Assembly (NCBI GenBank): GCA_026770705.1
Contig: JANJGN010000546.1
Location: forward strand, 248,001-312,000
Direction: 5' to 3'
From: Isurus oxyrinchus
Taxonomy: Eukaryota
Length of the DNA stretch: 64,000 bases
The notes beneath the pieces were generated by a model. The model was not told the origin of the DNA, did not search any database, and saw nothing but the letters and a program-made list of their open reading frames with translations. The translations under genes were made by a program, and so were the position numbers. This document shows positions 354-43,365 of the stretch, one piece after another (position 1 is the first letter of the stretch; each line of letters starts with the position of its first letter).

Positions 354-719
354 TTGGACTGTCACAAGAGTGGAAAGGTGACACTCCACGAGAGGTGACA
401 GCGCAGGAAGATTCCTGTGTACAGATTCCATGTCATTACAGTTATCCATCGTGTCTGGAAAACCAACCACGAGTTGGAGTCTGGTTTAATAATGAGGAAC
501 GGAGAACATTGTCTATAGCCTTTCACTCCAAGGATCACAGTCACGAGTTACCACAGTTCCACCATCGGACCCGGCTGTCTGGAGACCTGAAAGATGGCGA
601 CTGTTCTCTGATTATGAACAACATCAGACGGGAAGATGCAGGACCTTATTTTTTCAGAATAGAATTTGACAATGCTCCGAGCTATAACTATTACCCTGTA
701 ACCCAGCTTCACGTTTCTG
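354..719 (+). CDS. Siglec-like gene A, V-set Ig exon (sialic-acid-binding domain)
   Basis: ccacag|TT acceptor and TCTG|gtaagt donor; 366 nt, phase 1-1. Encodes (V)GLSQEWKGDTPREVTAQEDSCVQIPCHYSYP...RLSGDLKDGDCSLIMNNIRREDAGPYFFRIEF. Has the Siglec hallmarks: CxxxPC pair, E-strand Cys (GDCSL) and the essential F-strand Arg (YFFR). Confidence 0.93.
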
Positions 720-1457
720 GTAAGTGCTGTGTTATAATTACTCAACATTTCACATTCAACACTCAATGGGAAATAACACAAACTATGACGTTTACATATT
801 AACACAAAACACAGCTTATTATAACACACTGTCTGATTCTCGATATCCTGGTGATAGCTTCCAGTTCAGTCCTAAAGCAACCTCTAATACTCACTTTAAT
901 ATCAATGATTAAATATATTGACTGTGTCCATCAATGTTATCAGGTTATCCACTCCCATCGATCTCTCTAATCCTAATCTCTAATGTCTCGAAGCCTGACA
1001 TATCGACAGAAGAAAGATTCACATTTCTATAGCACCTTTCACCACCTCAGAACGTACCAAATCACTTCACAGCCAATGAGCTGATTCCTGAATTGTAGTT
1101 ACTGTTGTAAAGTGAGAAACACAGCAGCCAATTTGCGCAGAGCAAGCTCCCACAAATTGCAAAGTAATAAATGGCCCAGATCGCTGAGTGAATGATGGGG
1201 TAGTGCACTCCAAACTCTGGTCTGCTCCTCCACCCTCACCCACTATTATCAGTTCAAGTGTCTCGGAGTGAACGTGTGTTAAGCTGAGAGACAGAAACAC
1301 CAAAGTGTCAAAGCAGGAAATGCTCTCCTGATCATTGTAACCTCTCAGTTCTGATATCATCCTTGTAAAAGTGCTTTCTCTTGTGGGACTGTGGTTTCTA
1401 TTTGAACTGATGCTTCACGTTATATTTCTCTAAAAGGATCCATTCTCTGTCTGTTAG

Positions 1458-1754
1458 ATTTCACAGATAAACCCATGATATTCCCTGCTGAAATTATTGC
1501 AGGAAAGCGTGTGGATGTAAGCTGCACCTTCAACACAACGTGCAATGGAACAGCAGCACCTGTCTTAACCTGGGACACTCCCACTGACGTACCTGGATCA
1601 GTCTCAAACACTGTAACTCAGCATGGTGTCACTCTGACCTATACTTCTGTTCTGACCCTGATCCCATCACTCAAACACCACGGACACACTCTCAGCTGCA
1701 GAGTGAGATATCCATCTGTTTCATCGGAGCGGACCCTCGTACTAACTGTGCAAG
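1458..1754 (+). CDS. Gene A, first C2-set Ig exon (Siglec domain 2)
   Basis: gttag|AT acceptor (an in-frame alternative at 1467) and CAAG|gtaaga donor; 297 nt, phase 1-1. DFTDKPMIFP...VSCTFNTTCNGTAAPVLTW...LSCRV, with the extra Cys typical of the Siglec V-C2 interdomain disulfide. Confidence 0.9.
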
Positions 1755-1874
1755 GTAAGAACGGACACCCTTCCATCTACATTAGCTAGAAAGCTCTACA
1801 TAGTACACTGCAAGATCCCACAACTGCATTGTGTTTAGCAACAAATCAATAGTCTTTAACTGATACAAATTCGC

Positions 1875-2370
1875 CTCTGACACTGCAGCAGTCCCTAAAT
1901 ACTGAATCTCCAACACTGCTGCACTCCCTCAGTTCTGAACCTTCGATAGTGCAGCACTCCCTCAGTACTGACTCTTCAACAGTGCAGTGCTCCCTCAGTA
2001 CTGGCCCTCCCACACTGCAGCACCCCCCGAGTTCTGACCCTCCAACAGTGCAGCACCCCCTCTGGACTGACCATCAGACAGTGCAGCTGTCCCTATGTAC
2101 TGAACCTCTGACAGTACAGCACTCCCTCAGTACTGACTCTCTGACAGTGCAGCACTCCCTCAGTACTTACCCACCAACAGTACAGCACTCCCTCAGTAAT
2201 GACCCTCTGACAGTGCCGCACTCCCTCAGCACTGAACCTCTGACGGTGCAGTGCTCCCTCAGTACTGACTCTCTGACAGTGCAGCACTCCCTCAGTACTG
2301 ACTCTCTGACAGTGCAACACTCCCTCAGTACTGACCCTCTGACAGTGCAGCACTCCCTCAGTACTGAACT
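1875..2370 (+). repeat. 33-nt minisatellite (acagtgcagcactccctcagtactgaccctctg)n
   Basis: Direct repeats visible in the sequence; the 11-aa periodic ORF is a by-product. The same family occurs at 10660-10870, 42570-42930 (-), 49690-49870, 53440-53840 and 62140-62350. Confidence 0.92.
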
Positions 2371-2498
2371 GAAGTCTCTGCCTGGATTACGGGCTTTGTG
2401 AAAAAGAACCTACATTGAGATCATACCTTTCGCATTCTAAGTGTCTTTCAAAGTGCTTCACAGTCAGTGTAACTTAATTGATGTTTATTTGTTTATAG

Positions 2499-2780
2499 AT
2501 GCACCACAGAATCTCTCAATTAATTTTCTTGATATGATTAATGCTTCATCGATCAATATAATTGAGGGGAATTCTGCAGTGATAATCTGCTCTGTCGAGA
2601 GCTTCCCAGCTTCTAACCTGACGTGGCGACATCTTAATGTCCCAATGAACAGAACAAGTTCCAACAATGAGCTGTGGTTGGTGATTCCTCACGTTACATC
2701 CAGGGACACTGGAGACTATCAGTGTGTGGCAGAGAATGAACATGGAGCAGTGGAGGGATTCATAAACATCACTGTGGAAC
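2499..2780 (+). CDS. Gene A, second C2/I-set Ig exon
   Basis: tttatag|AT and GAAC|gtgagt; 282 nt, phase 1-1. DAPQNLSI...IEGNSAVIICSVESFPASNLTW...DTGDYQCVAENEHG. Confidence 0.9.
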
Positions 2781-2814
2781 GTGAGTTACACAGAATTGAA
2801 CGTTCTCTTATTAT

Positions 2815-3850
2815 TAGCTCATGGGATGTGAGTATTGTTGACAAGGCCAGAAATTATTGCCCATCTGTAACTGCCCCTTGAGAAGGTGGTGGTGAGCTGC
2901 CTTCTTTAACCACTGCAGTCCATGTGGTGTAGGTACACCCACAGTGCTGTTAGGGAGGGAGTTCCAGGATTTTGACCCAGCGACGGTGAAGGAACGGCCG
3001 ATATAGTTCCAAGTCCCAGGGCAGACCACCACCTCAAGTTCGCCTCCAAGTCACACACCTCACTGACTTGGAACTGTCTTGGTGGAAGAGGTTAAGGGTT
3101 TGGAAGGTGCTGTCGAAGGATCCTTGGTGAGTTGCTGCAGCGCATCTTGTACATGGTGCACACTGCTGCCATTGTGTGCCAGTGGTGGAGGGTATGAATG
3201 TTTATGCTGGTGGCTGGGCTGTCGATCAAACAAGCTGCTCCTGGATGGTGTCGAGCTTCTTGAGTGTTGTTGGAGCTGCACTCATCCAGCCAAGTGGAGA
3301 TTATTCCATCACACTCCTGACTTGTGCCTTGTCCGATGGTGGACAGGCTTTGGGGGGTCAGGAGTTGAATTACTCACTGCAGAGTTCCCAGCCTCTTACC
3401 CGCTCTTGTAGCCACATTATTTCCTGTTGCTGGGTTGTTGCCAGGGCCAATAGCCTTTGCTGTATCCAGTATCATCAGCTGATTCCTGATGTCACGTGGA
3501 GTCAATCGAATTGTCTGAAAGCTGACATCTGTGATGCTGGGACCCTCTGGAGGAGGCCGAGATGGAGCATCCACTCAGCACTTCTGGCTGAACATGGTTG
3601 CCAATGCTTCAGCCTTGTCGTTTGCACTGATGTGCTGAGCTCCCCCATCATTAAGGATGGGCATATTTGTGGAACATCCTCCTCCTGTTAGATCTTTATT
3701 GTCCATCACCATTCATGACTGGATGTGGCAGGACTGCAGAGCTTAGATCTGACCCGTTGGTTGTGGGATCGCTTTGCTCTGTCTATAGCATGTTGTTTCC
3801 GCTGTTTGGTGTGTATGTAGTCCTGTGTGTCACCTCAGCAGCTTGGCACC
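2815..3850 (-). mobile_element. Fragmented CR1-like LINE (3' portion)
   Basis: Minus strand reads FTVAGSKSWNSLPNSTVG and IRLTPRDIRNQLMILDTAKAIGP. Related to the element at 44552-45630; duplicated at ~54250-55280. Confidence 0.75.
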
Positions 3851-4044
3851 TCTGTTATATGTGAATCCTCCTTATAGAAACCTGCATGTACATGGATATT
3901 ATCAATAAATATTACATAGATAAATGTTATTTGTATAGACCTTTCATGCATAGACAATATCACTTCACAAGTTCAGAATTACTACATGTACATAGGGAAC
4001 CATTCTCAAACTGTACCGGAGTCATTCATTGGCTGATTTTACAG

Positions 4045-4141
4045 GGCGAGATTCCAATGAATGGAAAGCAGGATTGCTTGGAGCTGGAATCTGTTTGAGT
4101 GTTGGACTGAGTGGATTCTTCATCTCCAAGTGTGTGAGAAA
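4045..4141 (+). CDS. Gene A, transmembrane exon
   Basis: ttttacag|GG and AGAAA|gtaagt; 97 nt, phase 1-2. RRDSNEWKAGLLGAGICLSVGLSGFFISKCVRK. Same length and phase as the gene B TM exon. Confidence 0.85.
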
Positions 4142-4444
4142 GTAAGTGTGAAGGTTTAATTGGTTGTTTTTGAAAATGTTTTCTTCAAACTTCTCTCCTT
4201 ATAGAAAGAATTTGCATTTCTATAGCACCTTTTACAATCCAAAACCCTTCGCAGTCCCTGAAGAGTTTTGATGTTCACCTAGTGTTTAACATCTCATCCA
4301 ACATTCACTGTTTCACAACTCAGTCCTGTAACTGGCAGTGTTGACCCGGACCATAAAATAGCTTCTGACCTCCTGAGTTTGTGAATGCTGCTATACAAAT
4401 AAAAACCTTTCTTTTGTTAGTGAATGCAATCTCTTTCCATTTTC

Positions 4445-4665
4445 CATGATTCATTCACTCTCTCTTATCGCCACTAATGCACGCCTTCTCATTCTCTCTC
4501 TCATTCACTCTCTCTCTTATCTCCACTAATGCTCTCCTTCTCATTATCTCTCTCATTCCCTCTCTCTCCAATCTCCACTAATGCTCTCCTTCTAATTCTC
4601 TCTCTCATTCACTCTCTCTCCTATCTCCACTAATGCTCTCCTTCTCATTCTCTCTCTCGTCCTCT
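4445..4665 (+). repeat. Pyrimidine-rich minisatellite (ctccactaatgctctccttctcattctctctctcattcactctctct)
   Basis: About 4 degenerate direct repeats; fewer copies in the duplicate at ~55875-56040. Confidence 0.8.
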
Positions 4666-4949
4666 TACACGTTGTTCAGTATCTCACATTTTTAAGGAGT
4701 GCTGAGCATCATCTGCTCCTTCAGAAGATCCACCTCAACACCTGGAGTGAGCAGTGAATTGAAACTCGCTCAACGACTGCTCAGCTTTACACAGGAATCA
4801 CGTCACAGAGTCAGGACACAAAGGGTTAACTGTTTGCTTACAACACAACACTAAGGCCCTACATTTCAATGAAAGTGTTTTCACAATTGTTCCCCAATTC
4901 CTGATTTGACTCACAGTGACACATCAACCCTTTCTCATTAAATACACAG

Positions 4950-5034
4950 AGGGATCAGCACAGGAAGAGGTCATTCAGCCGAAGCAGAGCGTGTGGGCAG
5001 TTCCTCCCCAGGCGAACAGTCGGACAGGTCCTGG
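4950..5034 (+). CDS. Gene A, cytoplasmic tail 1, exon 1
   Basis: tacacag|A and TGG|gtaagt; 85 nt, phase 2-0. GISTGRGHSAEAERVGSSSPGEQSDRSW, in frame with the TM exon and the next exon. Confidence 0.75.
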
Positions 5035-5545
5035 GTAAGTAACAGAACGATTGGAATTCACTTCCACCACCAACACCGTCCTTTGTTGATGTTGTGACTT
5101 TATAAAGACAGATTCCAATGATTGATGCCTTTGAAAGATTTCTACTGATTATTGAGATCTGGGTGTGAGGCTCAAGTCTGTTGTACAGAACATCTTTCTG
5201 GTTAAATTGTGCAGACAGGTTACACACAGTCTACGATTATATTCCCTCGGGTCTAGAAGATTAAGGAGGGATCTAACTGAGGGGTTCAAACTGATTAAAC
5301 ACTCGATAGGGTCGATAGAGAGAAGCTATTCCCTCGGGTGGGGGTGGGTGGTGGAGGTCGGGTGGAGTCCAGAACAAGGGGGCTGGAACTTCAGATTGGA
5401 GCCAGGCCATTCAGGGGTGATGTCAGGAAGCACTTCTTCACACAAAGGGGAGTGGAAATCTGGAACTCTCTCCCCAATAATCAAACCCAACACCGAATAC
5501 ACATCATGTTGATTGTCACTCTGTCCATTTCCATCTCTATTACAG

Positions 5546-5650
5546 AAGAGAGGCAAGGGGAAAGCAGGAATCAAATCGAACCATCGTGTTGATGAACATC
5601 GAAGTCCTGTTTATGAAAACTGTGAGCGTGGTTGGGCTTTGAGGAATCAG
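5546..5650 (+). CDS. Gene A, cytoplasmic tail 1, exon 2 (VYENC motif)
   Basis: ctattacag|AAG and CAG|gtgagt; 105 nt, phase 0-0. KRGKGKAGIKSNHRVDEHRSPVYENCERGWALRNQ. Confidence 0.8.
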
Positions 5651-5782
5651 GTGAGTCACACACCACAGGATCCCCAGCCTCTCAGCTGCTCCAGTAGCCT
5701 GGTTATTGATATGGCTGCTCCAGTCCTGTATCTGCAATGTTTTATACAGTCACTCCCAAACCCAACCAAACTCACACCCAAC

Positions 5783-6620
5783 ACCGTTCAGAATCAATAA
5801 TCAAACCCCGTTCAGAATCAATAATCAAACCCCATTCAGTATCAATAATCAAACCCCATTCAGTATCAATAATCAAACCCCGTTCAGTATCAATAATCAA
5901 ACCCCGTTCAGAATCAATAATCAAACCCCGTTCAGAATCAATAATCAAACCCCGTTCAGAATCAATAATCAAACCCCATTCAGAATCAATAATCAAAACC
6001 CATTCAATATCAATAATCAAACCCCATTCAGTATCAATAATCAAACCCCGTTCAGAATCAGTATTCACACCCCATTCAGTATCAATAATCAAACCCCATT
6101 CAGAATCAATAATCAAACCCCATTCAGAATCAATAATCAAACCCTGTTCAGAATCAATAATCAAACCCCATTCAGTATCAATAATCAAACCCCGTTCAGA
6201 ATCAATAATCAAACCCCTTTCAGTATCAATAATCAAACCCTGTTCAGAATCAATAATTAAACCCCGTTCAGTATCAATAATCAAACCCCCTTCAGAATCA
6301 ATAATCAAACCCCGATCAGAATCAATCATCAAACCCCGATCAGAATCAATCATCAAATCCCGTTCAGAATCAATAATCAAACCCTGTTCAGAATCAATAA
6401 TCAAACCCTGTTCAGAATCAATAATCAAACACCGTTCAGAATCAATAATCACACCCCGTTCATTATCAATAAACAAACCCGGTTCAGTATCAATAATCAA
6501 ACCCCATTCAGAATCAATAATCAAACCGCGTTCAGAATCAATAATCAAACCGCGTTCAGAATCAATAATCAAACCCCGTTCAGAATCAATAATCAAACCC
6601 TGTTCAGTATCAATAATTAA
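5783..6620 (+). repeat. 24-nt minisatellite (aatcaataatcaaaccccgttcag)n, ~35 copies, intronic
   Basis: Direct repeats with an 8-aa periodic ORF. Duplicate at 57155-58015. Confidence 0.95.
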
Positions 6621-6715
6621 TGTATCTATTGTGGGTGGAATTTTCGATTTGGATCAATAATACTAAACACTGATCACTCTGATTGTCACTCTGATCATTT
6701 CTGTTTCTATTACAG

Positions 6716-6832
6716 AAGAAAGATGAGAAGGATCTGGAAATGAAATCTAACCGCGGAGTCAATCCTGATACAGATGATGATCTTTACGCAAACTGTGAAT
6801 TTGCCAAGGATTCTGTTTATGGGAATTTATAA
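6716..6832 (+). CDS. Gene A, cytoplasmic tail 1, terminal coding exon (LYANC, SVYGNL*)
   Basis: ctattacag|AAG; KKDEKDLEMKSNRGVNPDTDDDLYANCEFAKDSVYGNL followed by TAA. AATAAA candidates lie downstream (7606, ~7774). Confidence 0.8.
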   Translation, partial: KKDEKDLEMKSNRGVNPDTDDDLYANCEFAKDSVYGNL

Positions 6833-7889
6833 ACTGAGTAAGAATGAGACACACACAGTGTGGGGAGAATACAGAATGGGAGAATCATTCAAAACTCCAA
6901 TTTACCTTCCTAATATCCACAGGAACTCACTCCCAGGAAATAGATTTAAACCTCTTGTTACAATCTGATGGAATTTCTTCGGAATGATCTATCCAGGATG
7001 GTTGTCTGTGGGTTTCAATTCGAACATCCTCCTTCAGAATTGTCCCTCACTGTTGGAAACATCCTTCTCTCCATTCTGATTGTAAATGTCTTTAGATATC
7101 GTTCGATGATGTACCAGGACAGAACGGACAAATTCAATCCCGTGTCCGTGATTATGAGTTAATTTTCATTCTGTTATTCACCTTCCTGTCTGTCAGTGTT
7201 TACAGAATATTCATCAGCCAGTGTAGACTTCAGGAAATGCAGGATCGGTGGATAATTGGAGCAGAGGAGATTGGCAAAATTTACTCAGCATTTTGTAATC
7301 AAATGTATTTTCAGATATATATTTGGATTTTACACTTCATCGTTAAACCGCAAAACTAACAGCAATCCCAGAAACATGGAAACAATTTGTTTGGAGATTT
7401 GAGAAATTCTCTGCAGCTCAGAGGATAACAGATGTGATACAGTGCCACCACTGGTGGGAGGACATCATTTCAGCATGACATGTTTACATTGATGTTGCCA
7501 ATGAACATTGGAAATTATGATGTGAAAAATTGGTTGCAGGTTTACCTTCTTCAATATGTCATAGATGGATGAGACAGCTTTGATAACAGAATGAAATAGA
7601 GCTGCAATAAACCACCATTTTAGTCTTTCACACTTGGAGAGTACAATGAGCATCCATTCTGAAGGCTGAGTGGATGGGTGGACTGTGCGATGTGTTACAG
7701 ATTACAGAGACCAACATACTCGATCCTGGTTCCGCTCTGTGTTTGATGACATTCTTGGATAAAAGATTGGGAAAATAAATAATCCTCCGGCCTTAACCTG
7801 TAACTGGTCTCTCCATCTGTCAATGTCCTGAGGACAGAATTGGGTTTGAGGTCCCAAATCAGACGCATACTTTGACTGCCCATTGAATA

Positions 7890-8885
7890 GGAACAGGAGG
7901 AGGCCATTCAGCCCCCTCGAACCTGCTACACAGGAACAAGAGAGCACCTGAAATAAAAACAGAAAATGCTGGAGAAACTGAGTAGGTCTGGCAGCATCTG
8001 TGGAGAGATAAACGGAATTAACATTTCGAGTCCGTATGACCCTTCTTCAGAGTCTATAAGCAAAAATTCTGTTTCTCTCTCCACAGCTGCTGCCAGACCT
8101 GCTGAGGTAATGCAGCATTTTCTGTTTTTATTGAAGATTTATAACATCTGCAGTATTTATTTTTAATGAGAGGAGGACATTCAGCCCCTCGACCCTGTTA
8201 CACAGGAACAGGAGGAGGCCATTCAGTCCCCTCGAGCCTGTTACACAGGAACAGGAGGAGGCCATTCAGCCCCATGAGCCTGTTATACAGGAAAAGGAGG
8301 AGGCCATTCAGCCCCTCAAGCCTGTTACACAGGAACAGGAGGAAGCCGATTCAGCCCCTCGAGCCTGTTACACAGGAACAGGAGGAGGCCCATTCAGCCC
8401 CTCGAGCCTGTTACACAGGAACAGGAGGAGGCCCATTCAGCCCCTCGAGCCTGTTACACAGGAACAGGAGGAGGCCCATTCAGACCTTCGAGCCTCTTAC
8501 ACCAGAACGTAAGGACGTCATTTCAGCCCCATGAGCTTGATGAACAGGAACAGGAGGAGGTCCATTAAGCCCCTCAAGTCAGTTACATAGGAACAGGAGA
8601 AGTCTCATTCAGCCACACGAGCATCTTATATAAGAACATGAGGGGGCCCAAACAGCCCCTCAAGCCTATTACACAAGAAGCAGAGGAGGAGGTTCATTCA
8701 GTCCCTCGAGGCAATTATAAAGGAACAGGAGGAGGCCCATTCAGTCACACAAGCCTCTTACACAAGAACAGGAGGAGGTCCATTCAGCCCCTCAAGCCTG
8801 TTACACAGGAACAGGAGGAGGCCCATTCAGCCACACAAGCCTGTTACACAGGAACAGGAGGAGGCCCGTTCAACCCCCTCGAGCT
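7890..8885 (+). repeat. ~42-43-nt minisatellite (acaggaacaggaggaggcccattcagcccctcgagcctgttac)n, interrupted by a Penelope-end palindrome at ~7950-8135
   Basis: Direct repeats. The unit resembles the antisense CR1 3' end seen at 21420-21455. Duplicate at 59285-60290. Confidence 0.85.
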
Positions 8886-9050
8886 TGTTGCATGTGAACA
8901 GTCGATGGCCCTTCAGCTACATTCTTGGCACGCAAAGGGTTAACAGGTTTCTAACTGTGCGAGGCAAAGAGTTGCTTTCTAACTTGGTACTAACCACTTC
9001 CTCATTTTGTCTCACAGTGACACATCAACCCTTTCTCATTAAATACACAG

Positions 9051-10174
9051 AGGGAGCAGCACAGGAAGAGGTCATTCAGCCCAAGCAGAGCGTGTGGGCA
9101 GTTCCACCCCAGGCGAGCAGTCGGACAGGTCCTGGGTAAGTAACGGAACGATTGGAATTCACTTCCACCACCAACACCGTCCTTTGTTGATGTTGTGACT
9201 TTATAAAGACAGATTCCAATGATTGATGCCTTTGAAAGATTTCTACTGGTTATTGAGATCTGGGTGTGAGGCTCAAGTCTGTTGTACAGAACATCTTTCT
9301 AGCTCAAGGGATGAGGGAAGAGCAGGGACATGAGCTTTGGGGTGTCCTGAGCAGGTGAAAGGCGATATAGAAATGCAAGTCCTTCATTGTTTTACTTTCT
9401 TAAAGCCTTGTAACTCTCTGCAGAGCACATATCATCCCACAGAGAATGAAATTAGTCTGTGAAGACATTGTCTAAAAGCAGTTCTGATCTCTCGAGAGGT
9501 GTCGGACAAGAGGTGAGGTCTCATTAACTCATTTCTCTTTCACAGCTTGAGAACCAATGAAATACCTGGGAGTGGACAATGATCAGGAAATCTTACTTCC
9601 TCCTGTCACTTCTCCAAGGTAATATCATCGTCAGCTCGGATAGATTTATGGCTAATCATCTTTGTAAAACATAATTCTTATTGAGCTGTGATTGGGAACA
9701 GATTCAGCAGTGAGCCAGTGTACAAACTCACACCAAGTCCCATTCACCCATCACCCCTGTGCTCACTGATATACACTGACTCCCTGTCTGACAGCAGAAT
9801 TGGAGGAGAGCAGAGGCCTTGGAGGTTTGCATGGTTGGAGGAGAAAGTGATTGGAGAAGAGGAATGGAGGGAATGGAAATTGAGGATGAGAGTCTTAAAC
9901 TCGAGGCTCTGCTGGTCTGGGAGCCAGTGCAGGTCAGCGAGTGGCAGAGGGTGTGAGGTGTTGAGTCGAGAAACAGTGATAAATACTGGGGGATGAAGTC
10001 TATCCTGATGCTTGGACTCCGATAGCAAAGGAATGAAATTTGTGTCTTTTGCTGATTTTAATCAGAATTTCCCATGAAGACAACACAGCAGCTCCTAGAA
10101 TAGACAGGCTGTTCAGTGTCACACTTCCTGTCCATTCTCACCATGCTAGATACTTCAATAAGGGAGCAAGATAA
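9051..10174 (+). CDS. Gene A, alternative tail cassette 2 (exons 9051-9135, 9546-9618, 10066-10174); truncated or pseudo
   Basis: A second copy of the 85-nt exon with intact ag/gt. The next exon is 73 nt (7 nt shorter than its paralog at 11646) and reads LENQ-stop in phase 0. The last exon keeps the open frame ISHEDNTAAPRIDRLFSVTLPVHSHHARYFNKGAR*. Confidence 0.5.
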
Positions 10175-10403
10175 CTGAAAGAGAGAAGGAAGGTAAAGCT
10201 GTCCGTGTGTAAAGGTGTCAATATACAGTTTGTATATTTGTCTTTCTCTCGACACATGCAGAGCTCAGGCTAGAGGCACTTTGTTAGTGTGTTTCACAGT
10301 GTCTGCTGGAGTAGGGTCAGTGCTGAGCTTGGGGACAAGTCAGTCTACAATGCTGCATCGGAATCAACAATACAACAATATGGGGTTTGGATCAGAAATA
10401 ATC

Positions 10404-10500
10404 CCTTAGACAATGAGGATCCAAAGAGATTCCTTAAACAATGAGGATTCAAAGAGATTCCTTAGACAATGAGGATCCAAAGAGATTCCTTAGACAATGA
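10404..10500 (+). repeat. 28-nt VNTR (ccttagacaatgaggatccaaagagatt)
   Basis: 3.5 copies here and 6.5 copies at 61801-61981. Confidence 0.9.
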
Positions 10501-11150
10501 ACATACAAAGTGCACCAATCAGATTGAATCAGATTAGCCAATCAGCTGTGTTGAAGAGCAGACAGGAATGTTAGGCTAATTAGTGATTCATGACGGAGAT
10601 AATGGGGGCAGTTCTGAGGGCTCCTAATCCATTGTCCTGTCTTGTAAATCAGCACCTTAATACTGACCCTCCAACAGTGCAGCACTCCCTCAGTACTGAT
10701 CCTCCAACATTGCAGCACTCCCTGATTAATGTCCCTCTGACAGTGCAGCACTCCATCAGTACTGACCCTCAAACAGTGGAGATCTCCCTCAGTACTGACC
10801 TTACAATAGTGCAACACGCGCTCAGTAATGACCATCCGACAGTGCAGCACTTGCTCAGTACCGACACTGGGGAGTTTCAGTCTACTCTGTGGGGCAGACG
10901 TCCCCTGAATGGGGTCTTGAACCCCACAACGTTCTGACCCCCTGAATTTGGCTGTGAAACCCACTGACCCACAGGAGAAATTCCTGGTCAATGACTGTCC
11001 ACCTGTGAGCAAAAATATCACCACAGGGTCAGGACACAAAGGGTTAACAGTTCACCAACATCTCAAAACATGTGCTGCTCTGTCACTTTGATCCAACTTC
11101 CTCATTTTGTCTCAAAGTTACACATCCACCCTTTCTCATTAAACACACAG

Positions 11151-12289
11151 AGGGAGCAGCACAGGAAGAGGTCATTCAGCCCAAGCAGAGCGTGTGGGCA
11201 GTTCCTCCCCAGGCGAGCAGTCGGACAGGTCCTGGGTAAGTAACGGAACGATTGGAATTCACTTCCACCACCAACACCGTCCTTTGTTGATGTTATGACT
11301 TTATACAGACAGATTCCAATGATTGATGCCTTCGAAAGATTTCTATTGATTATTGAGTTCAGGGTGTGAGGCTCAGGTCTGCTGTACAGAACATCTTTCT
11401 AGCTCAAAGGATGAGGGAAGAGCAGGGACATGAGCTTTGGGACATCCTGAGGTGGTGAAAGGTGCTATAGAAATGCAAGTCCTTCATTGATTTATTTTTT
11501 TAAAGCTTTTTAACTCTCTGCAGAGCACCTATCATCCCACAGAGAACCAAATTAGTCTTTGAAGACATTGTCTAAAAGCAGTTCTGATCTCTCGAGAGCT
11601 GTCGGACAGGAGGTGAGGATTCATTAACTCCTTTCTCTTTCACAGTTTAAGAGTCAGAAGCTAAAGGAATATCTGGGAGTGGACAATGGTCGGGAAATCT
11701 TACTTCCTCCTGTCACTTCTCCAAGGTAATAACATCGTCAGCTTGGACAGATTTATGGTGAATAGTCTTTGTAAAAGAACATTCTTACTGAGCTCTGATA
11801 GGGAACCGATTCAGCAGTGAGCCAGTGTACAAACTCACACCAAGTCCCATTCACCCATCACCCCTGTGCTCACTGATATACACTGACTCCCTGTCTGACA
11901 GCAGAACTGCAGGACAGCAGAGACCTCAAAGGGTTTCAGGGCTGGAGGAGGTGACAGTGACAGGGAGTAGAGAGGGAGGATGGAGGGATAAGGAATCAAT
12001 GAAGAGATTTTGAAAATTGAGTCATTGCTGGACTGGGAGCCAGTGTAGGTCAACGGGTGACAGGGGAGCGATCGGCTGAATAGAGAAGCAGGGATAAAAA
12101 CTGAGGGATGAAGTCTATCCTGATGCAAGCACTCCGATATCAATGCCCTGAAATTTTTCTCTCTTGCTGATTTTCATCAGAATTTCCCATGAAGACAACA
12201 CAGAAGCTCTTAGATTAGACAGGCAGTTCAGCGTCACACTTCCTGTCCATTCTCACCATGCTAGAAAATTCGATAAGGGAGCAAGATAA
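11151..12289 (+). CDS. Gene A, alternative tail cassette 3 (exons 11151-11235, 11646-11725, 12181-12289)
   Basis: All splice sites are canonical with phases 2-0, 0-2 and 2-stop. Continuous ORF: GSSTGRGHSAQAERVGSSSPGEQSDRSW/FKSQKLKEYLGVDNGREILLPPVTSPR/ISHEDNTEALRLDRQFSVTLPVHSHHARKFDKGAR*. Frame and stop position of the last exon are kept in the copies at 10066 and 63662. Confidence 0.6.
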
Positions 12290-12779
12290 CTGATAGAGAG
12301 AAGGGAGGCAAAGCTGTCTGTATGTAAAACTGTCAAATATTCTGAGTTATCATGATTGTTTCTGATCTGCTGCAGAGTTTATATTTCATTGAATCTTATC
12401 ACTTTGCAGCTCAGAGAGAGACCATTGACTCACTGCCTGAAAGGGCGGTGGAAGCAGATTCAACAGGAACTTTCAGAAGGGGAACTGGATAAATACTTGA
12501 AGGGGACATTTTGCAGGGCTTTGGGGGAGAGAGCAGAGGTGAGAGTGGGACTTATTGGACAGATCTTTCAAAGGCCCAGCACAGGCTCGATGGGCCAAAT
12601 GGCTTCCTTCAGTTCCGGATCATTCTACAATCCGATAAATTAAATCTCTTATCAGTAACTCTTCAGGCTCCTGCTGCAGGAATGGATCTTTCAGAAGGGC
12701 AACAAGCGGTTTCTCATATCATGTTCATATTTATTGACAATTACATAAGTGTATGGAACTGTTGAATATTTGAGTCTCT

Positions 12780-15700
12780 CAAGTGTGGATTTAACCTTCT
12801 GGTACACCCAGATCTTGTGCTGGTTACCTTGTCTGGAGGTGTCTTTAACTGCTCACAGTGATCTGTGGGATTGTCACCCTTGGATGTTGTTCCTGATTTC
12901 ATGTGGGATCTTCTCCTCGATGGAATAGGAGCGGGAATGGATCTGATTTATCCTCGGTTCCACCTCACCGCTGTGCCCTTGTGTGTTTGACTCCATAGGC
13001 CCTTGGTTCTGAACAAATCCTTGTCACCTCGGCTGGTGGTCATGAACCTTCTGTGGGATCCTGGATGTGAACTTGTCCCAACTGTAAACTTGGCAACTCT
13101 GCACCTCCATTTTTATCATGAACATTCCTTATCTTCTCTTGTAGTTTTAAAAGTTGCGCTCTGGTTTCTGAGAGAGTAGAATGGGTAAGAATAGCGAAAT
13201 TGGTCACTACTGGCCCACCAAACATGCTCTCTGTCAGTGATGGAATAAGGTGAGGTGATGGTGTAGTGGTATTGTTGCTGGATGAGTAATTCAGAGACCC
13301 AGGGTAATGTCCTGAGAATATGAGTTCAAATCCTGTCATAATAGATGATGGAATTTGAATTTAATAAAAAGATGAAATTCAAAGTCTAGTGATGACCACA
13401 AAACCATTGTTGGAAATCCCACCTGGCTCACCAGTGCCCTTAAGGGAATAAAATTGTCTGGCCGACATGTGACTCCAGACTCCACGTCAATGTGGTTAAC
13501 TCTTACATTAGGGATGGGTAATAAATCCTGGCCTGACCAGTGACTCCCACATCCCATGAATGAATTTAACAAAGTTGCAGTTATAGGTGTCGATCTCAAA
13601 TGTAACATTGCAATGTGTGGATCTTGCTTGGCCTGTCTACATTTGAGAATTAGGGATTTCACTGTGTGAATCATTCATTCAGCTAGGCTGTTAGATCTGG
13701 GGTAATGAGGAGAAGAAGTAGTGTGATTGATATTCCAGATTATCTGTAATCATGTCCCTAGGCTCACCAAATAAACTGAAAATAGTGCTTAGAGTGTAAG
13801 CAGCAGTTGTGCTCGGTGTGTTGTGCTATTTTTGAATAACGGGATATCTGGTAAAGCTGTCGACGATGACGATGAAGTCAGTGACATGGACATGAAAGGA
13901 TTCAGATGTGATTTTGGACTAAGAATGGGCAGGAATTTCCTGTGGAATCAGTGGTTCTTTGTCTTGACTTGGCTCATCCTCTTGACAAGCCTCGAACTTC
14001 CCTACAACGACTTCAAGGTCATTGTTTATACCCGGCCAGGGACTGTATCTCTTGTGAGTCTCCTTGTCTGATCTGTGCCCATGTGTGAAGGATGAAGTTG
14101 TTGAAGAATATATCATCACAAAGGTTCTGGTATGATGCGATGCCTGCCATTAAAAATGACTCCCTGGGAGATGCCTCGCTTATCCCGATGACGTCAAGTT
14201 GAATCAGGCCACCCTTTCAATGATATTTCCACAGTTCCTGTAGATTTTTTCACTGTCCCCTCTTGTAGCTGCTGGCATTTCTGTTGTGCTAAATGTACTG
14301 GATCAATTGACAGACTTGCATTCTCCTGCAGGTGTAATGTTGCAGCTCCCTTGAAACTGCAAATACTGTTGAAACTTTCTGCATATTTCAATGTTATGTC
14401 CATGAACTGAGTTGATGGGGTAGTTTCTGAGGTTGACCCATGTCAGTTCTGACAGATTCCATGGATTGTCACTAGTGTGAGGTCACCGCATGCCGGTAGA
14501 CTTGCAATTGCTCAGCCTTTAGTCTCCATGAGGTAGAACATCTGTGACACCCAGGAGGATTGATTGTACTTGCACCCCAGGACTATGTATTCCGCACATG
14601 GAATTGGTGAATTGTTGTACACAGCAGTAGGTTTCCCCATGGACTTCCATGTCCTTAGATACATGTCTTTGAAAATTTACTGGGGTGGTCTGGGGGAGGG
14701 GAATGTTGGCACTTGCCCTTGTGTCAATCTTGGCCAATAAAGGAGAGGTAGCAACTTTCTCAGGGCAGATAATTGGAATCTTGGCCAATAGTGCGGGTGA
14801 TGTGACAGCATCTGTTCTCCGTGAGATTGATGGTGTAAAAGGTGTGAAATTGTTCAACAATTGCACAAAACGTTGAGCACAAATGTTGCACAAACTCTAG
14901 GCCAGGGTTTTCCGGCCCGGTCATGGTGGGACCTGCCTTGGGAGATTGGGACAAATATAAATCCATTGGCTTTCGGACGGACCGGACAATCATGGAAGTG
15001 GGTGGGGCCAGAAAATCCCACCCCTATGGGAACATTTTCAGTTTATTTGATGTGCCCAGAGAGATCAACAAAGACCACAATCAACAATTTATTGGCAAGC
15101 CACGTCAGAATATGTGTGAGAGGTGGAATACCGATCACCGCTCCTAGTCTCGTCGTGTACATCATCGCCATTTCCTGGTTTGTCAGTCACCACATGTATA
15201 TGTTCCTGATGGGATAGCGGATGGTCATTCTTATTGCTTGAAGGTTCCCCGTTGTGCAGGGTTTGTTTGGATCAGCGCACGGCTCTTTGTAGCTGCATCA
15301 GCCTTTGCTCTAGTGCCCTACCGCTGTCAATGGCCCTTTCTGCCACAAGCCTTGCAGGATTGGTGGAAAGCTGGGCATTTCCTTGGTGCCTGCAGGAGGC
15401 CACACCTTCCACACGTCTCACTAGGTTTGGATGTTCTCGTGAGTGTGTCAACAATTGATGTTGTACAGAGGACCTGTAAGCTTCGTTGACGTGCGAGGAT
15501 CACTTCGTATTTATGTCCATCCTTGAGTAGCTCTTCAATGCTATAGGTTTTGGTCTTATCTAGCAGATCTTTCTGGAAGGCTTCCATGGGAGTGGATGCG
15601 ATCACCAACTCAACAACTGTGTCTGCAGTCTCTGTGTTTGAAATCACAGTGCGTACCCTTTTCTCTACATCGGCTGATGAAGTGGTCTATGGATTGTGTA

Positions 15701-29200: not shown

Positions 29201-29403
29201 AGGACACCCAGATCCCTCTGTACTGCATTCTGCATCCTGTCTCCATTTAAATAATATCCTATTTTTCTATTCTTCCTGCCAAAATAATTTGTTGCCATTT
29301 TCCTCAGTATTGACCATCCCCCCAATTCAGCCTCATCTGTAAATTTTGAGTCTAGTGGATCCACAAACCATCCAGAGTTAAATATTGATATTTCTCTCCC
29401 CAG

Positions 29404-30585: not shown

Positions 30586-30882
30586 ATTTCACAGATAAAC
30601 CCACGATATTCCCTGCTGAAATTATTGCAGGAAAGCGTGTGGATGTAAGCTGCACCTTCAACACAACGTGCAATGGAACAGCAGCACCTGTCTTAACCTG
30701 GGACACTCCCACTGACGTACCTGGATCAGTCTCAAACACTGTAACTCAGCATGGTGTCACTCTGACCTATACTTCTGTTCTGACCCTGATCCCATCACTC
30801 AAACACCACGGACACACTCTCAGCTGCAGAGTGAGATATCCATCTGTTTCATCGGAGCAGACCCTTATGCTAACTGTAAAAT
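30586..30882 (+). CDS. Gene B, C2-set exon 1
   Basis: gttag|AT and AAAT|gtaagt; 297 nt. Almost identical to 1458-1754. Confidence 0.9.
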
Positions 30883-31249
30883 GTAAGTATGGATTCCCTT
30901 CATTCTATATTAGCTGTAATAGGATACAATGTGCAGAGCAAGATCCCACAAACATCACTTGAAGACAAAACAGGTCCTTTTTTATTAGTGATATTGACCA
31001 GGGAGAGCTCTTCCTGTATTGAGCCTTGGGATTGTTTATGCCTACCTGATAAGGCAGAGGGGGCCAAGGTTGAACTTAAAAGACAATATAGGATAATATA
31101 AATATTGTCTTCATTGATGTCAAAGATTTTGGGGGAGATGTAGTATAAAAGTTTAATATTAACAATGTAAATAGATAGTATTTATCATCAGTTACTCAAG
31201 GTCACATGAGAATAGAACACGGAGAGAGATAGTTCTATAGATACCTAGG

Positions 31250-34486: not shown

Positions 34487-35012
34487 CACACACGCACCAA
34501 CAGACACACACACACATGNNNNNNNNNNNNNNNNNNNNNNNNNNNNNNNNNNNNNNNNNNNNNNNNNNNNNNNNNNNNNNNNNNNNNNNNNNNNNNNNNN
34601 NNNNNNNNNNNNNNNNNNNNNNNNNNNNNNNNNNNNNNNNNNNNNNNNNNNNNNNNNNNNNNNNNNNNNNNNNNNNNNNNNNNNNNNNNNNNCACACGCA
34701 CACGCGCACACAGACAACACACACGCACACACAACACACACACACCTGCACACACGCACATGCACACACACGCACACACACACACACACGCATACACACA
34801 CACACGTAAGCACGCACATTCACATGCACANNNNNNNNNNNNNNNNNNNNNNNNNNNNNNNNNNNNNNNNNNNNNNNNNNNNNNNNNNNNNNNNNNNNNN
34901 NNNNNNNNNNNNNNNNNNNNNNNNNNNNNNNNNNNNNNNNNNNNNNNNNNNNNNNNNNNNNNNNNNNNNNNNNNNNNNNNNNNNNNNNNNNNNNNNNNNN
35001 NNNNNNNNNNNN
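34487..35012. repeat. (CA)n-rich microsatellite containing two assembly gaps (34519-34691, 34831-35012)
   Basis: Seen directly. Other CA/TG tracts at 35729-35815, 46930-47220 and 49390-49495. Confidence 0.95.
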
Positions 35013-35422: not shown

Positions 35423-35704
35423 ATGCACCACGGAATCTCTCAATCAATTCTCTTGATATGATTAACGCTTCATGGATCAATATAATTGAGGGGAATTCTG
35501 CAGTGATAATCTGCTCTGTCGAGAGCTTCCCAGCTTCTAACCTGACGTGGCGACATCTTAATGTCCCACTGATCAGAACAAGTTCCAACAATGAGCTGTG
35601 GCTGGTGATTCCTCATGTTACATCCAAGGACACTGGAAACTATCAGTGTGTGGCAGAGAATGAACATGGAGCAGTGGAGGGATTCATAAACATCACTGTG
35701 GAAT
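35423..35704 (+). CDS. Gene B, C2/I-set exon 2
   Basis: ttttag|AT and GAAT|gtgagt; 282 nt. YAPRNLSI...IICSVESFPASNLTW...DTGNYQCVAENEHG. Confidence 0.9.
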
Positions 35705-36612: not shown

Positions 36613-36894
36613 ATGCACCACGGAACCCATCAATTACTTCTCTTGATATGATTAACGCTTCATCGATCAATATCATTGAGGGGAATTCTGCAGTGATAAT
36701 CTGCTCTGTCGAGAGCTTCCCAGCTTCTAACCTGACGTGGCGACATCTTAATGTTCCAATGAACAGAACAAGTTCCAACAATGAGCTGTGGTTGGTGATT
36801 CCTCACGTTACATCCAGGGACACTGGAGACTATCAGTGTGTGGCAGAGAATGAACATGGAGCAGTGGAGGGGTTCATAACCATCACTGTGGAAT
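36613..36894 (+). CDS. Gene B, C2/I-set exon 3 (tandem duplicate of exon 2)
   Basis: tatttag|AT and GAAT|gtgagt; 282 nt. Near-identical to 35423-35704 and 2499-2780. Confidence 0.9.
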
Positions 36895-38757: not shown

Positions 38758-39033
38758 ATCCCCCACAGGAGACGATGGTGTCCATCAGCAGATCCTCAGG
38801 TGGGATAAGAGAGGGAAGCAATATCACATTAACCTGCTCCAGTGAAAGTGTCCCTCCGATATCTCATTACACTTGGTTCAGGATCGAGGGGAACACCAGC
38901 ACCCAGTTAAACACAAGTAGCCGCACTCTCTCCTTCACTCCTGTAACACGGGAGAATGATGCAGGTTTCTACTGCACAGCGAGGAACCCAGTGGGTAACA
39001 GCACCTCCAACATCACCCACCTGAACGTACAAT
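38758..39033 (+). CDS. Gene B, C2-set exon 4 (CD22-like)
   Basis: ttccag|AT and CAAT|gtaagc; 276 nt. YPPQETMVSI...IREGSNITLTCSSESVPPISHYTWF...DAGFYCTARNPVG. Confidence 0.9.
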
Positions 39034-40061: not shown

Positions 40062-40355
40062 ATAAGCCGGAGATTTCCCAGCAGTTGGAGTGCACTCGGA
40101 GGTCAGAGGGGGTCACCTGCGTCTGTGTGGCCAACTCCAACCCACCCGGAGACCTCACCTGGCACCTGCCCAGTGCCAACATCAGTGGTAACCAAACACA
40201 CGGAGGTTTTGTGTCGTGGCAGGTCAGAGATGGGCATCTGGTGACTGGTTCCCTCACCCTGATGAGACCCCAGGATGAGGGGGGAGTGATGGCATCCTGC
40301 TCGGTTCAAAACCCACACGGGGAAGCCATGTTCAAGGTTTATCTGTGGGTCAAAG
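40062..40355 (+). CDS. Gene B, membrane-proximal Ig exon 5 (MAG domain-5 / CD33-related type)
   Basis: cctcag|AT and AAAG|gtgaca; 294 nt. YKPEISQQLECTRRSEGVTCVCVANSNPPGDLTWHLP...ASCSVQNPHG. The C-x8-CxC-x3-S-x-P pattern is characteristic of this Siglec domain. Confidence 0.88.
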
Positions 40356-40704: not shown

Positions 40705-40890
40705 AAATATTATATATAAACATTACATAGATTACATCGAGAAACATTATATATAAATATTACATAGATTACATTGATAAATATTATATATAAATGTTAC
40801 ATAGATTACATTGATAAATATTATATATAAATGTTACATAGATTACATTGATAAATATTATATATAAATGTTACATAGATTACGTTGAGA
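40705..40890 (+). repeat. 37-nt AT-rich minisatellite (aaatattatatataaatgttacatagattacattgat), ~5 copies
   Basis: Direct repeats visible in the sequence. Confidence 0.9.
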
Positions 40891-41313
40891 AACGCAACAG
40901 CTGATTTGTGCAGAGCAAGATCCCACAAACAACAGTGTGAAGATGAGGTGATAAATGATTATTTTAGTGATGTTAGTTGATACATATATATAGAAATTAA
41001 AGATATAATTACAAATTTAGTGAGGGAAACCTGTCCATTTTAACAGGTCTGGGTGTATATGTGACTCCAGTCTCAGACACCAACATGGTTAACTCTTACC
41101 TGCCCTCTGAACTGGTCTCCCAGTTTGGGACAAACCAGTGGTTCAGGAGGAAGACCCCCCACCACCTTCTCAAGGGGAAACTAGGGATGGACAATAAATG
41201 TCAGCATTGCCCGAGAATGAGTATTTAAACACTGAGTGAGTGTATCGCTTCTCGAGATACATCGGAGCATCATTGTAAACCTGTAGTGCAGTAATTAATG
41301 GCTGTTTTTACAG

Positions 41314-41410
41314 GTAGAGACTCCAGTAAATGGACAGTAGGATTGTTCACGGCTGGGATCATGTTGAGTGTTTTCCTGGCTGGAATCTTCATCTTCATCT
41401 GTGTGAGAAA
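41314..41410 (+). CDS. Gene B, transmembrane exon
   Basis: tttacag|GT and AGAAA|gtaagt; 97 nt, phase 1-2. GRDSSKWTVGLFTAGIMLSVFLAGIFIFICVRK, with an uncharged core. Confidence 0.9.
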
Positions 41411-42287
41411 GTAAGTCTGAAGATTTAACTTGATTTTAATATAAACATTTGCTTCAATGTTCTTTCCTTAAGTCGGTGATTGTTTCCCTTGGGATCAGCA
41501 CCAGTTCCCTCTCTGTAAGTGATCCCTGTGTCCACTCTGATCCGGAGAGAACCTTTCATTGTCCTGTATCCAGGTAAACAATCACGAGACCCAGAGATTC
41601 CTCACTCTGCACGATTACTCCGGGATAAATATTTGCTTCAATGTTCTTTCCTGAAGTCGGTGATTGTTTCCCTTGTGTTAAGCGCCAGATGCCTCTCCCT
41701 AACTGGTCTCTTTGTCCCTTACGATCCAGACAGTGTTTTTCATTGCCCGTTATCCAGATGAATAATAATCAGTTGCTGTGATCTGGAAGGCGCTGCCTGA
41801 AAGGGCGCTGGAAGCAGATTTAATAGGATCTTTCAAAAGGGGAATTGGATAAATACTTGAAGGGGGAACATTTGAAGGGCTATGGGGGGAAGAGCAGGGG
41901 TGGAGGGGGGGTAAAAGATATGGCGTGTTATTATAATGATATTATACCTTAGGCTTATTTACTGTACAAGAAACAAAGCACCAATCGCTCACAGGGTTTG
42001 GGTGAGAATGTTGTCGGTTTGTTTATCAGGACTCGGCACGAGAACGGTTATACATACGGATAAAGATTGAAGGCATCAGAGCCGTGAGTGTGTGTTCTGC
42101 TCAAAGCAAAAGTCAAACTAAGATTGGATCACATGACACACTTCCATTATAGTGATGTCACGCTGATATCCCTTATTGGAACTAGAGACAGTCCAGTCGT
42201 TGGTGTAAGGTTACAGTGGGCTCTGTGTCTGTGCTGCACTGACTCTCTGCTATATGATAACCACAGTGTGATATTGTGTTATTGCAG

Positions 42288-42369
42288 GAGAAAGACAGCG
42301 ATGGAGGAGAGAGTTTCAGGGACCAGTGACATTGCATTGACCCCCAGGTCACTCTCTGTGAAGCACCAG
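42288..42369 (+). CDS. Gene B, cytoplasmic exon 1
   Basis: attgcag|G and CAG|gtacag; 82 nt, phase 2-0. RKTAMEERVSGTSDIALTPRSLSVKHQ. Confidence 0.8.
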
Positions 42370-43116
42370 GTACAGGAGCTGTTTACACTCACTTCAAAGC
42401 TTCAACCTCAGTGTGTCGACAACACGTATACCAGATTCTCAGCCGGGTTACACATAGATATCTCCCTGTGAAGCAATGGCTCAGTGGTCAGCACTGTCTC
42501 TCGCTCCCAGCCTCTGTCACCCTCCATCACTCGCTCTTTGACCAGAAACCTGAACACAAGGCACCTGATGTCAGTAGTGAGGGAGTGCTGCACTGCCAGA
42601 GGGTCAGTATTGAGGGAGTGCTGCGCTGTCAGAGGGTCAGTACTGAGGGAGTGCTGCCCTGTCAGAGGGTCAGTACTGAGGGAGTGCGGCACTGTCAGAG
42701 GGTCAGTACTGAGTGAGTGCTGCACTGTCAGAGGGTCAGTACTGAGGGAGTGCTGCACTGTCAGAGGGTCAGTATTGAGGGAGTGCTGCACTGTCAGAGG
42801 GTCATTACTGAGGGATTGCTGGACTGTCAGAGGGTCAGTACTGAGGGAGTGCTGCACTGTCAGAGGGTCAGTATTGAGGGAGTGCTGCACTGTCAGAGGG
42901 TCAGTACTGAGGGAGTGCTGCACTGTTGGAGTGTGATAGAGATTAAATTATAAAGAGAGAGAGAAAGCGAGAGAGAAAGAGAGACAGAGAAAGAGAGGGA
43001 AAAAAAGGGTTAAACCCACTGAGACACGACTGACACTAATGAGGCTGCACAATAATTTAACCCTATCAGTGCCAGTAAATGATGTGAGGATGTCTTCTGT
43101 TTCCATTTCTCTGTAG

Positions 43117-43365
43117 GGTAAACAGAACGTGCTGATTACTGAGCCCCAGAACACAACCAGAGACACAGCTAGCGAGGGGGAGACCCCAGCTCCCTGGGAT
43201 CTCTCTGAAGGTCCAGTGGGAGGCGATGTTGGACATGGGAACCCCGACAATACCGACGAGCTTCTCTACGCCAACATCAACTTTTCAAAGCTGCCCAGCG
43301 GTGACAGGACTGTGCACAGGAGCGAGGACACGGAATACGCACAGATCAGGTTCCAGAAAAACTGA
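43117..43365 (+). CDS. Gene B, terminal exon with ITIM and ITIM-like/ITSM-like motif
   Basis: ctctgtag|GGT; GKQNVLITEP...TDELLYANINFSKLP...SEDTEYAQIRFQKN followed by TGA. Confidence 0.9.
   Translation, partial: GKQNVLITEPQNTTRDTASEGETPAPWDLSEGPVGGDVGHGNPDNTDELLYANINFSKLPSGDRTVHRSEDTEYAQIRFQKN

Follow-up and report, generated by a model that had tools for sequence, protein, structure and literature searches.

We analyzed a 64,000-nucleotide window of the Isurus oxyrinchus genome (positions 248,001 to 312,000 of contig JANJGN010000546.1, GenBank assembly GCA_026770705.1; coordinates below are those of the window). Using self-comparison and exon mapping with related proteins, we found that the window contains part of a cluster of Siglec-like genes: gene A, the 5' units X1 and X2, gene B, the partial gene psiC, and two more 5' units, X1' and X2' (Table 1). 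We focus on gene B, which probably encodes an inhibitory receptor with several V-set domains. The proteins encoded in the window are not themselves present in the protein collections that we searched. The closest proteins are from the great white shark and the basking shark, with 85-96% identity per exon, which places the animal among the lamniform sharks. By self-comparison, the immunoglobulin (Ig) exons that genes A and B have in common are 90-95% identical at the nucleotide level. A preliminary description of this DNA had called these exons near-identical; they are alike, but not to that extent.

The V exons match both the V-set (46.6 bits, with a cut-off of 26) and Ig_CD22 (34.5 bits, with a cut-off of 27) families from Pfam. 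Among solved structures, their top matches are all Siglecs (E = 8.5e-14 to 2.5e-10). The best solved relatives are Siglec-5, Siglec-8, and CD33 (E = 8.5e-14 to 1e-11), and Siglec-10, sialoadhesin, and MAG are found as well; these matches do not separate the CD33-related Siglecs from sialoadhesin or MAG. Two B-strand cysteines, an E-strand cysteine, and the arginine of the YFFR motif align with the solved Siglecs. Based on general knowledge of Siglec structures, we take the B- and E-strand cysteines to form the intrasheet pair and the extra B-strand cysteine to pair with C2-1. The YFFR arginine aligns with the arginine of Siglec-5 in the V exon of gene A, in V3 and V4 of gene B, and in V2 if it is read across its break, but not in V1 (FFTIKF). 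The Siglec cysteine pattern is complete in gene A's V, in V1, and in V2; V3 lacks the E-strand cysteine and V4 lacks the first cysteine. The C2-1 domain of gene B aligns with domain 2 of MAG and CD33, and its extra cysteine (FNTTC) is kept and is aligned with PDNC from domain 2 of MAG. Finally, the tail of gene B has the arrangement of the CD33-related Siglecs, with a proximal immunoreceptor tyrosine-based inhibitory motif (ITIM), LLYANI, and a distal motif, TEYAQI, that resembles an immunoreceptor tyrosine-based switch motif (ITSM). The tail motifs of human Siglec-5 and Siglec-9 are LHYASL and TEYSEI (PMC2722167). Together with the phase-1 Ig exons, the family scores and structure matches bear out the Siglec identity and the modularity that were proposed previously.

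The V exons of gene B lie in a tandem repeat, and all four have the same splice acceptor (tatttctctccccag) and the same donor (a final G followed by gtaagtgctg). Three of the four are phase 1 at both ends, and V2 is out of frame. Thus, the earlier claim that four phase-1 V exons lie ahead of one constant region needs an amendment: there are four V exons and one constant set, but V2, with 368 nt, is not phase-compatible. Because the Ig exons are phase 1, any subset of the in-frame V exons would keep the frame. V2, V3, and V4 start with AEPSQ instead of VGLSQ, differ from each other at 6 to 11 codons, and match the second V domain of P0180 and P0198 (great white shark) and of P0004 (basking shark) at 85-91%. 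The first V domain of these same three proteins has the basic, Trp-rich C-C' segment that is typical of V1. Since V2-V4 are nearly identical, choosing among them would add little diversity.

The repeat units themselves are also very similar. The second and third units (U2 and U3) are 99.0% identical, and unit 1 (U1) is 97.6-97.8% identical to the other two. Between units, 37 to 103 positions are different, and private changes occur in the exons as well as in the introns. U1 and U2 have 96 differences; 67 of these are inside the V exon, and the divergence outside it (3.2 kb) is about 0.9%. Because the differences are concentrated in the exon, V1 appears to be an old and distinct type of V exon within a frame that was homogenized or recently copied. 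Two routes could have led to this mosaic pattern: conversion of the exon from a V1-type donor, or homogenization of the flanks while selection preserved the exon. The ratio of nonsynonymous to synonymous substitution rates (dN/dS) among the V copies is 0.6-1.4, from few changes, which does not separate relaxed from diversifying selection. The expanded copies seem to be under relaxed constraint, given that V2 carries a frameshift and that a structural cysteine is missing from both V3 and V4.

To see how V exons are arranged in related proteins, we searched for V domains in 1.84 billion representative proteins and then counted the V domains in the retrieved models. Among the 231 retrieved proteins with a detected V domain, 98 have two or more. 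In models from sharks and rays, 2 to 5 V domains abut exactly at the exon border, with ..QLQVS at the end of one exon and AEPSQEWKG.. at the start of the next. A model from the cloudy catshark has five V domains in series and a sixth further on; models from the small-spotted catshark, a devil ray, and a stingray have four in series; and models from the starry smooth-hound (Mustelus asterias) and the basking shark have three. In the multi-V models, the first V domain after the leader starts with VGLSQ, and the inner V domains start with AEPSQ or VGLSQ. The closest homologs of gene B, P0180 and P0004, have a V1-type domain and then a V2-type domain in series.

Spliced contigs give the same picture. 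We considered contigs from four public runs that aligned to 25700-31000. Run X4 is RNA-like: its exon contigs have depths of 300-1100, as compared to 10-40 for its intron contigs. In one X4 contig, the 3' end of a V exon (TTCACGTTTCT) lies directly before an AEPSQ-type V start, at 25844. In a second X4 contig, the V end at 26213 is joined to a VGLSQ-type V start, and in a third, the V end TTCACGTTTCT lies before C2-1, at 30585. Also, in run X18, a contig connects 29771 with 30585 across GT..AG and has 120 letters on one side of the junction and 200 on the other. The V-to-V junctions are in transcripts that are at least 95% like gene B, which excludes one V per transcript in these relatives. 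The proposal that diversity arises by choosing one V exon therefore fails on the V-to-V contigs, on the relatives with 2 to 5 V domains in series, and on the small number of codons that distinguish V2-V4. As for gene B itself, two or more V domains in series are predicted from these junctions and from the homologous models, and a frame through all four V exons is blocked by the frameshift in V2.

The start of gene B had been elusive: no leader exon had been seen between 12.3 and 18.7 kb, and it was suggested that genes A and B might share a leader or a transcription unit. We confirmed that this stretch has no leader, but two of them, in X1 and X2, lie just upstream of it. With these two intact leader exons available to gene B, there is no need for a leader or transcription unit that is common to both genes. 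If the leader of either X1 or X2 is joined to V1, the result is ..LLQ followed by VGLSQEWK, which is the same as the N-termini of the homologs (MIGKSYFLLSLLQVGLSQEWK). X1 and X2 are 88% alike.

Both leader exons had previously been assigned to gene A, as parts of an array of signalling tails with three phase-compatible cassettes behind one transmembrane (TM) exon. There are indeed three copies of a phase-compatible 85-nt exon after the TM exon of gene A (4950-5034, 9051-9135, and 11151-11235). However, in cassettes 2 and 3 the second exon is a leader (with ATGs at 9579 and 11686, respectively), and the matches to the tails of homologs (P0007, P0014, and P0217) are confined to 4950-6832. Furthermore, in the great white shark model P0160, an exon similar to t1, the first tail exon of gene A, is followed by a leader exon and then by a V exon (t1-like exon, MGNSSPGEHSDRSW; leader exon, SLRVRSEWHIWEWTMIRKSYFLLSLLQ). 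The t1-like and leader exons of P0160 map to 11194-11235 and 11644-11724. These comparisons indicate that cassettes 2 and 3 are each a t1-like 5' exon and a leader exon of gene B, and not tails of gene A. The t1-like exon of X1' has lost its acceptor, which is dispensable for a first exon, so the t1-like exon could be a first exon; the t1-like exon of X2' lacks a donor. For building gene models at this locus, the implication is that the "extra tails" of gene A would be promoter-proximal exons of gene B.

The 85-nt exon and its flanks form a block of about 306 bp that occurs six times in the window, with 93.5-96.7% identity (4894-5199, 8994-9300, 11093-11400, 56266-56571, 60391-60697, and 62574-62881). 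The block contains coding tail exon 1 in gene A and psiC, and an exon ahead of the leader in X1, X2, X1', and X2'. Because X1 and X2 are otherwise just 88% alike, the block looks as if it was homogenized by gene conversion. In the leader exon of X1 (at 9557-9618), a further ATG (MKYLGVDNDQEILLPPVTSP..) lies upstream of the signal peptide and in a different frame. This upstream ATG is the start in P0017, a great white shark model, and in catshark models, MKYLEGT is in frame with MIGKSYF. X2 has lost the upstream ATG.

Table 1. Features of the Siglec-like cluster in the window.
Feature	Position	Strand	Remarks
Gene B, tandem repeat	18661-29829	+	3.56-kb unit, 3.1 copies; each unit has a V exon, reverse-transcriptase fragments of a long interspersed nuclear element (LINE), and a 37-bp minisatellite
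Gene B, V1	18717-19094	+	378 nt; starts with VGLSQ; basic, Trp-rich C-C'; essential Arg replaced by Thr (FFTIKF)
Gene B, V2	22286-22653	+	368 nt; 1-bp deletion after 22397 gives a frameshift and a stop inside the exon
Gene B, V3	25845-26213	+	369 nt; E-strand Cys replaced by Tyr (GDYSL)
Gene B, V4	29404-29772	+	369 nt; first Cys replaced by Phe (GSFVQIPC)
Gene B, C2-1	30586-30882	+	Joined to a V4-like V exon in a spliced contig
Assembly gaps (two)	34519-34692, 34831-35012		Within CA-rich sequence of the C2-1 to C2-2a intron
Gene B, C2-2a	35423-35704	+	Exon mapping
Gene B, C2-2b	36613-36894	+	Exon mapping
Gene B, C2-3	38758-39033	+	Exon mapping
Gene B, C2-4	40062-40355	+	Exon mapping
Gene B, TM exon	41314-41410	+	Exon mapping
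Gene B, cytoplasmic exon 1 (cy1)	42288-42369	+	Exon mapping
Gene B, last coding exon (cy2)	43117-43365	+	ITIM LLYANI, ITSM-like TEYAQI, then stop
X1, 5' exon	9051-9135	+	Copy of t1; the 306-bp block 8994-9300 is 96.7% identical to 4894-5199
X1, leader exon	9546-9618	+	ATG at 9579, giving MIRKSYFLLSLLQ; phase-1 donor
X2, 5' exon	11151-11235	+	Copy of t1
X2, leader exon	11646-11725	+	ATG at 11686, giving MVGKSYFLLSLLQ; phase-1 donor
Gene A, V-set exon	354-719	+	366 nt, phase 1/1; three Cys and YFFR, canonical
Gene A, C2-1	1458-1754	+	Exon mapping
Gene A, C2-2	2499-2780	+	Exon mapping
Gene A, TM exon	4045-4141	+	RDSNEWKAGLLGAGICLSVGLSGFFISKCVRK
Gene A, tail exon t1	4950-5034	+	Similar to tail sequence in P0014 and P0007
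Gene A, tail exon t2	5546-5650	+	VYENC inside; P0007 has t2-like and t3-like tail segments (by eye)
Gene A, last coding exon t3	6716-6832	+	LYANC, SVYGNL, then stop
psiC	53955-58228	+	Partial (headless) copy of gene A, C2-2 through tail
X1' and X2' (5' units of the next gene)	60448-63206	+	Leader ATGs at 60976 and 63167

From 18717 to 43365, gene B has canonical splice sites throughout, and its C2 exons are phase 1/1. The two assembly gaps lie in an intron of 4.5 kb, with the nearest exons 3.6 kb upstream and 0.4 kb downstream. We checked both gaps and found no exon or open frame that touches or crosses either of them. The order of the exons of gene B is the same as in the homologs across the gap region. 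Since family members differ in how many C2-2 exons they have, the gaps could conceal a further exon. Two great white shark models, P0198 and P0160, have both cytoplasmic exons twice in series (..TEYAQIR followed by RKTAMEERVSG..), which suggests either tandemly duplicated tail exons or read-through models.

Overall, we believe that gene B is probably a multi-V, Siglec-like inhibitory receptor gene with a young amplification of V exons that are spliced in series. Its four V exons would be cassette exons of a common phase (with V2 frameshifted). V1, with its Trp-rich C-C' loop, would be the older type, and V2-V4 would have arisen by recent unequal crossing-over of the 3.56-kb unit, which is rich in transposon fragments and minisatellite. 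Transcription would start at X1 or X2, each of which would provide a non-coding exon derived from a tail and then a leader exon. The V exons would be spliced to each other and the last V exon to C2-1, as seen in relatives that are at least 95% alike. The remaining exons would encode further C2 domains, the TM segment, and the tail with LLYANI and TEYAQI, as in the CD33-related Siglecs. Several sialic-acid-binding heads on one inhibitory stalk might give the receptor higher avidity or reach, and the outer domain, V1, might bind something else or serve as a spacer, as it lacks the arginine. To yield a working protein, V2 would need to be skipped, or its 1-bp deletion would need to be an assembly error, which it may be.

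Several observations weigh against this proposal. Including V2 breaks the frame, so a protein with four V domains is impossible from the sequence as written. (The contigs that we aligned did not show a V2-type deletion at the matching place in V3, but this is uninformative.) Most of the variant letters in the RNA-like contigs match none of the repeat units in the window, which implies that these contigs are not from the individual that was assembled. They come from other individuals or species, and they show how the family behaves rather than this exact locus. In the X4 contig that reaches C2-1, the V exon ends with CACG, but V4 in the window has CACA, so that animal may skip V4, lack it, or carry a polymorphic form. 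Splicing of the leader to V1, of V1 to V2, of C2-1 to C2-2, and of the t1-like exon to the leader lies outside of the region with contigs and is a prediction. The homologs are automatic gene models and not cloned complementary DNAs. Lastly, the two assembly gaps separate the V array from constant exons, so treating gene B as a single gene hangs on the scaffold join; the agreement with the exon order of the homologs is consistent with one gene.

The damage to the V exons raises the question of whether gene B is decaying, with redundant V copies that drift in a haplotype that is a pseudogene or nearly so. V2 is frameshifted, V1 lacks the essential arginine, V3 and V4 each lack a cysteine of the Siglec pattern, dN/dS among the copies is 0.6-1.4, and there is a dead copy, psiC, next door. 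Yet the other exons and every splice site are intact, and exons with at least 95% similarity are plentiful in the RNA-like runs. Also, a dN/dS near 1 is usual for immune receptors under diversifying selection as well, and the 1-bp deletion may not be real. We consider decay to be an unlikely explanation, if a serious one. Alternatively, the assembly could have over-expanded an array that truly has one or two V2-type exons. The closest annotated homologs do have V1 and a single V2-type domain, repeats that are 98-99% alike are hard to assemble, and there are gaps nearby. But with 37-103 differences and private changes in exons and introns, the units diverge beyond what is expected for copies of one sequence, and by more than is expected for two haplotypes as well. 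Multi-V genes also recur in other species. An artefact of this kind seems very unlikely to us.

If the V exons are spliced in series, they might still be used selectively. Under regulated combinatorial use, transcripts would differ in which V cassettes and which of the two leader units they include, and in how many, so that splicing would place different sets of lectin heads on one stalk. The phase 1/1 V exons with identical splice sites would allow this, as any subset is in frame, and a frameshifted V2 would be tolerable if it is skipped. The annotated isoforms of the closest great white shark gene (XP_041037226-230) include V1-V2 and V2 only (with V1 skipped), the three isoforms of catshark XP_038670868-874 have at least 6 different V exons and the same last V, and in X4 a V exon without V4's own 3' end is joined to a B-type C2-1. 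However, these isoforms are automatic models, which makes them a lead and not a finding; they are from relatives, and the locus itself is known from its sequence alone. V2-V4 are also nearly one domain, so that combinations would add little, and identical splice sites offer no handle for regulated choice. We think that combinatorial use is improbable. Its more far-reaching form, in which V cassettes and the two leader units are combined per transcript and recurrent unequal crossing-over adds cassettes, to give germline diversity without rearrangement, is quite doubtful. Strict choice of one of the four V exons per transcript, which was the original idea, has just the compatible phases in its favor (the leader can join any V). 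It is already contradicted for close relatives, both by the V-to-V junctions in RNA-like data and by the V domains in series. In gene B, the 3.56-kb unit has LINE fragments and a minisatellite but no promoter or leader for each exon, and nothing about the 3.2-kb introns, with ordinary GT..AG ends, would enforce exclusivity. We regard strict choice as extremely unlikely. Thus, we favor splicing in series, and gene B is likely to belong to an elasmobranch-wide family of Siglec-like inhibitory receptors with several V-set domains in series.

It is useful to compare gene B to known receptors. The textbook layout of a Siglec includes a single V domain, or two in the case of Siglec-12. Siglec-12 resembles the receptor proposed for gene B in two respects, namely an inhibitory stalk that carries V-set domains in series and the loss of the arginine from a V domain: in primates, Siglec-12 has two V-set domains, and human Siglec-XII has lost the essential arginine (PMC6288428). 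But gene B has four V exons (and its relatives have up to five or six V domains), its arginine-less domain is the outermost, its extra copies are very young tandem duplicates, and its host is a shark instead of a primate. The CD33-related Siglecs (such as Siglec-5 and Siglec-9; PMC2722167; PDB 2zg2) have a V-set cysteine pattern (complete in gene A's V, in V1, and in V2) and a YFFR arginine that align with those of the window (E = 8.5e-14), C2 domains next, a proximal ITIM and a distal TxYxxI motif, and genes that are clustered with paralogs and pseudogenes. Unlike them, gene B carries several V exons, and its C2-2 exon is repeated. Also, Siglec-5, Siglec-8, Siglec-10, CD33, sialoadhesin, and MAG score alike, so no single mammalian ortholog is singled out. 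The clustered protocadherin and UGT1A loci, like gene B, have similar "variable" exons upstream of one constant set. Their variable exons each have their own promoter and no acceptor, and one is used, whereas the V exons of gene B have acceptors, have no leaders of their own, and are probably spliced to each other. The V-to-V contigs and the models with V domains in series likewise speak against an array of the protocadherin or Dscam type, in which a mature transcript contains one variable exon.

The most similar genes are automatically annotated elasmobranch models that have been named Siglec-12, Siglec-13, CD33-like, or MAG-like (such as great white shark XP_041037226, basking shark XP_078389734, and catshark XP_038670868). 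They have the same leader, V1- and V2-type domains, C2, TM, and tail exons, with V domains in series and 85-96% exon identity. The closest of these have V1 and one V2-type domain, whereas gene B has three V2-type exons, one of them with a frameshift. In the searchable literature, multi-V Siglecs of cartilaginous fish are not described as far as we could find, even though they are already predicted by automatic annotation; on Siglecs of sharks or other cartilaginous fish in general, our searches turned up no more than a brief mention in the whale shark genome paper. This family of receptors appears to be large in sharks and rays, and its members would have from two up to five or six serial lectin heads on stalks that bear ITIM or YxN motifs. 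This locus shows how an array may grow, by very recent tandem duplication of a 3.6-kb V unit, with new copies that quickly lose hallmarks. If isoforms do mix V cassettes, that would be a new way of diversifying an innate receptor.

Gene A is a shorter paralog of gene B with one true tail. All of its exons have canonical splice sites and compatible phases, and AATAAA is found at 7606, 3' of the tail. The tail contains three YxN motifs (VYENC, LYANC, and VYGNL), of which VYGNL fits the ITIM as well. The flanks of t2 and t3 are alike, which suggests that an exon was duplicated. Between t2 and t3, at 5780-6617, lies a 24-bp minisatellite with 35 copies; its counterpart in psiC is at 57160-58013. 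Upstream of gene A, the flank at 24-353 is homologous to the flank of V4 from gene B.

By self-comparison, 1971-12519 is duplicated at 53442-64000, with 91-96% identity. Within this duplication, psiC is a copy of gene A that begins in the intron ahead of C2-2. Although the tail exons of psiC still look intact, a 27-bp deletion removes the end of the C2-2 exon and its donor, and a 1-bp deletion frameshifts the TM exon. Using exon mapping with related proteins, we found no V, C2-1, or leader exon between 43.4 and 53.9 kb. From these changes, psiC appears to be a dead partial copy of gene A. We also considered psiC as an alternative 3' end for gene B, and rejected this because of the deleted C2-2 donor and the frameshifted TM exon.

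Two other kinds of repeated sequence are present in the window. A 33-bp repeat (CCTCTGACAGTGCAGCACTCCCTCAGTACTGAC) is arrayed at 1874-2367, 10661-10865, 42570-42926, 49687-49871, 53442-53836, and 62142-62346, on both strands. One of these arrays is at the left edge of the duplication that links gene A and psiC, and the repeat may mark breakpoints of unequal crossing-over. On the minus strand at 13040-15650, inside the long intron between the leader units and V1, there are open frames that resemble a retrotransposon gag (with a zinc knuckle) and pieces of pol; these were named by eye.

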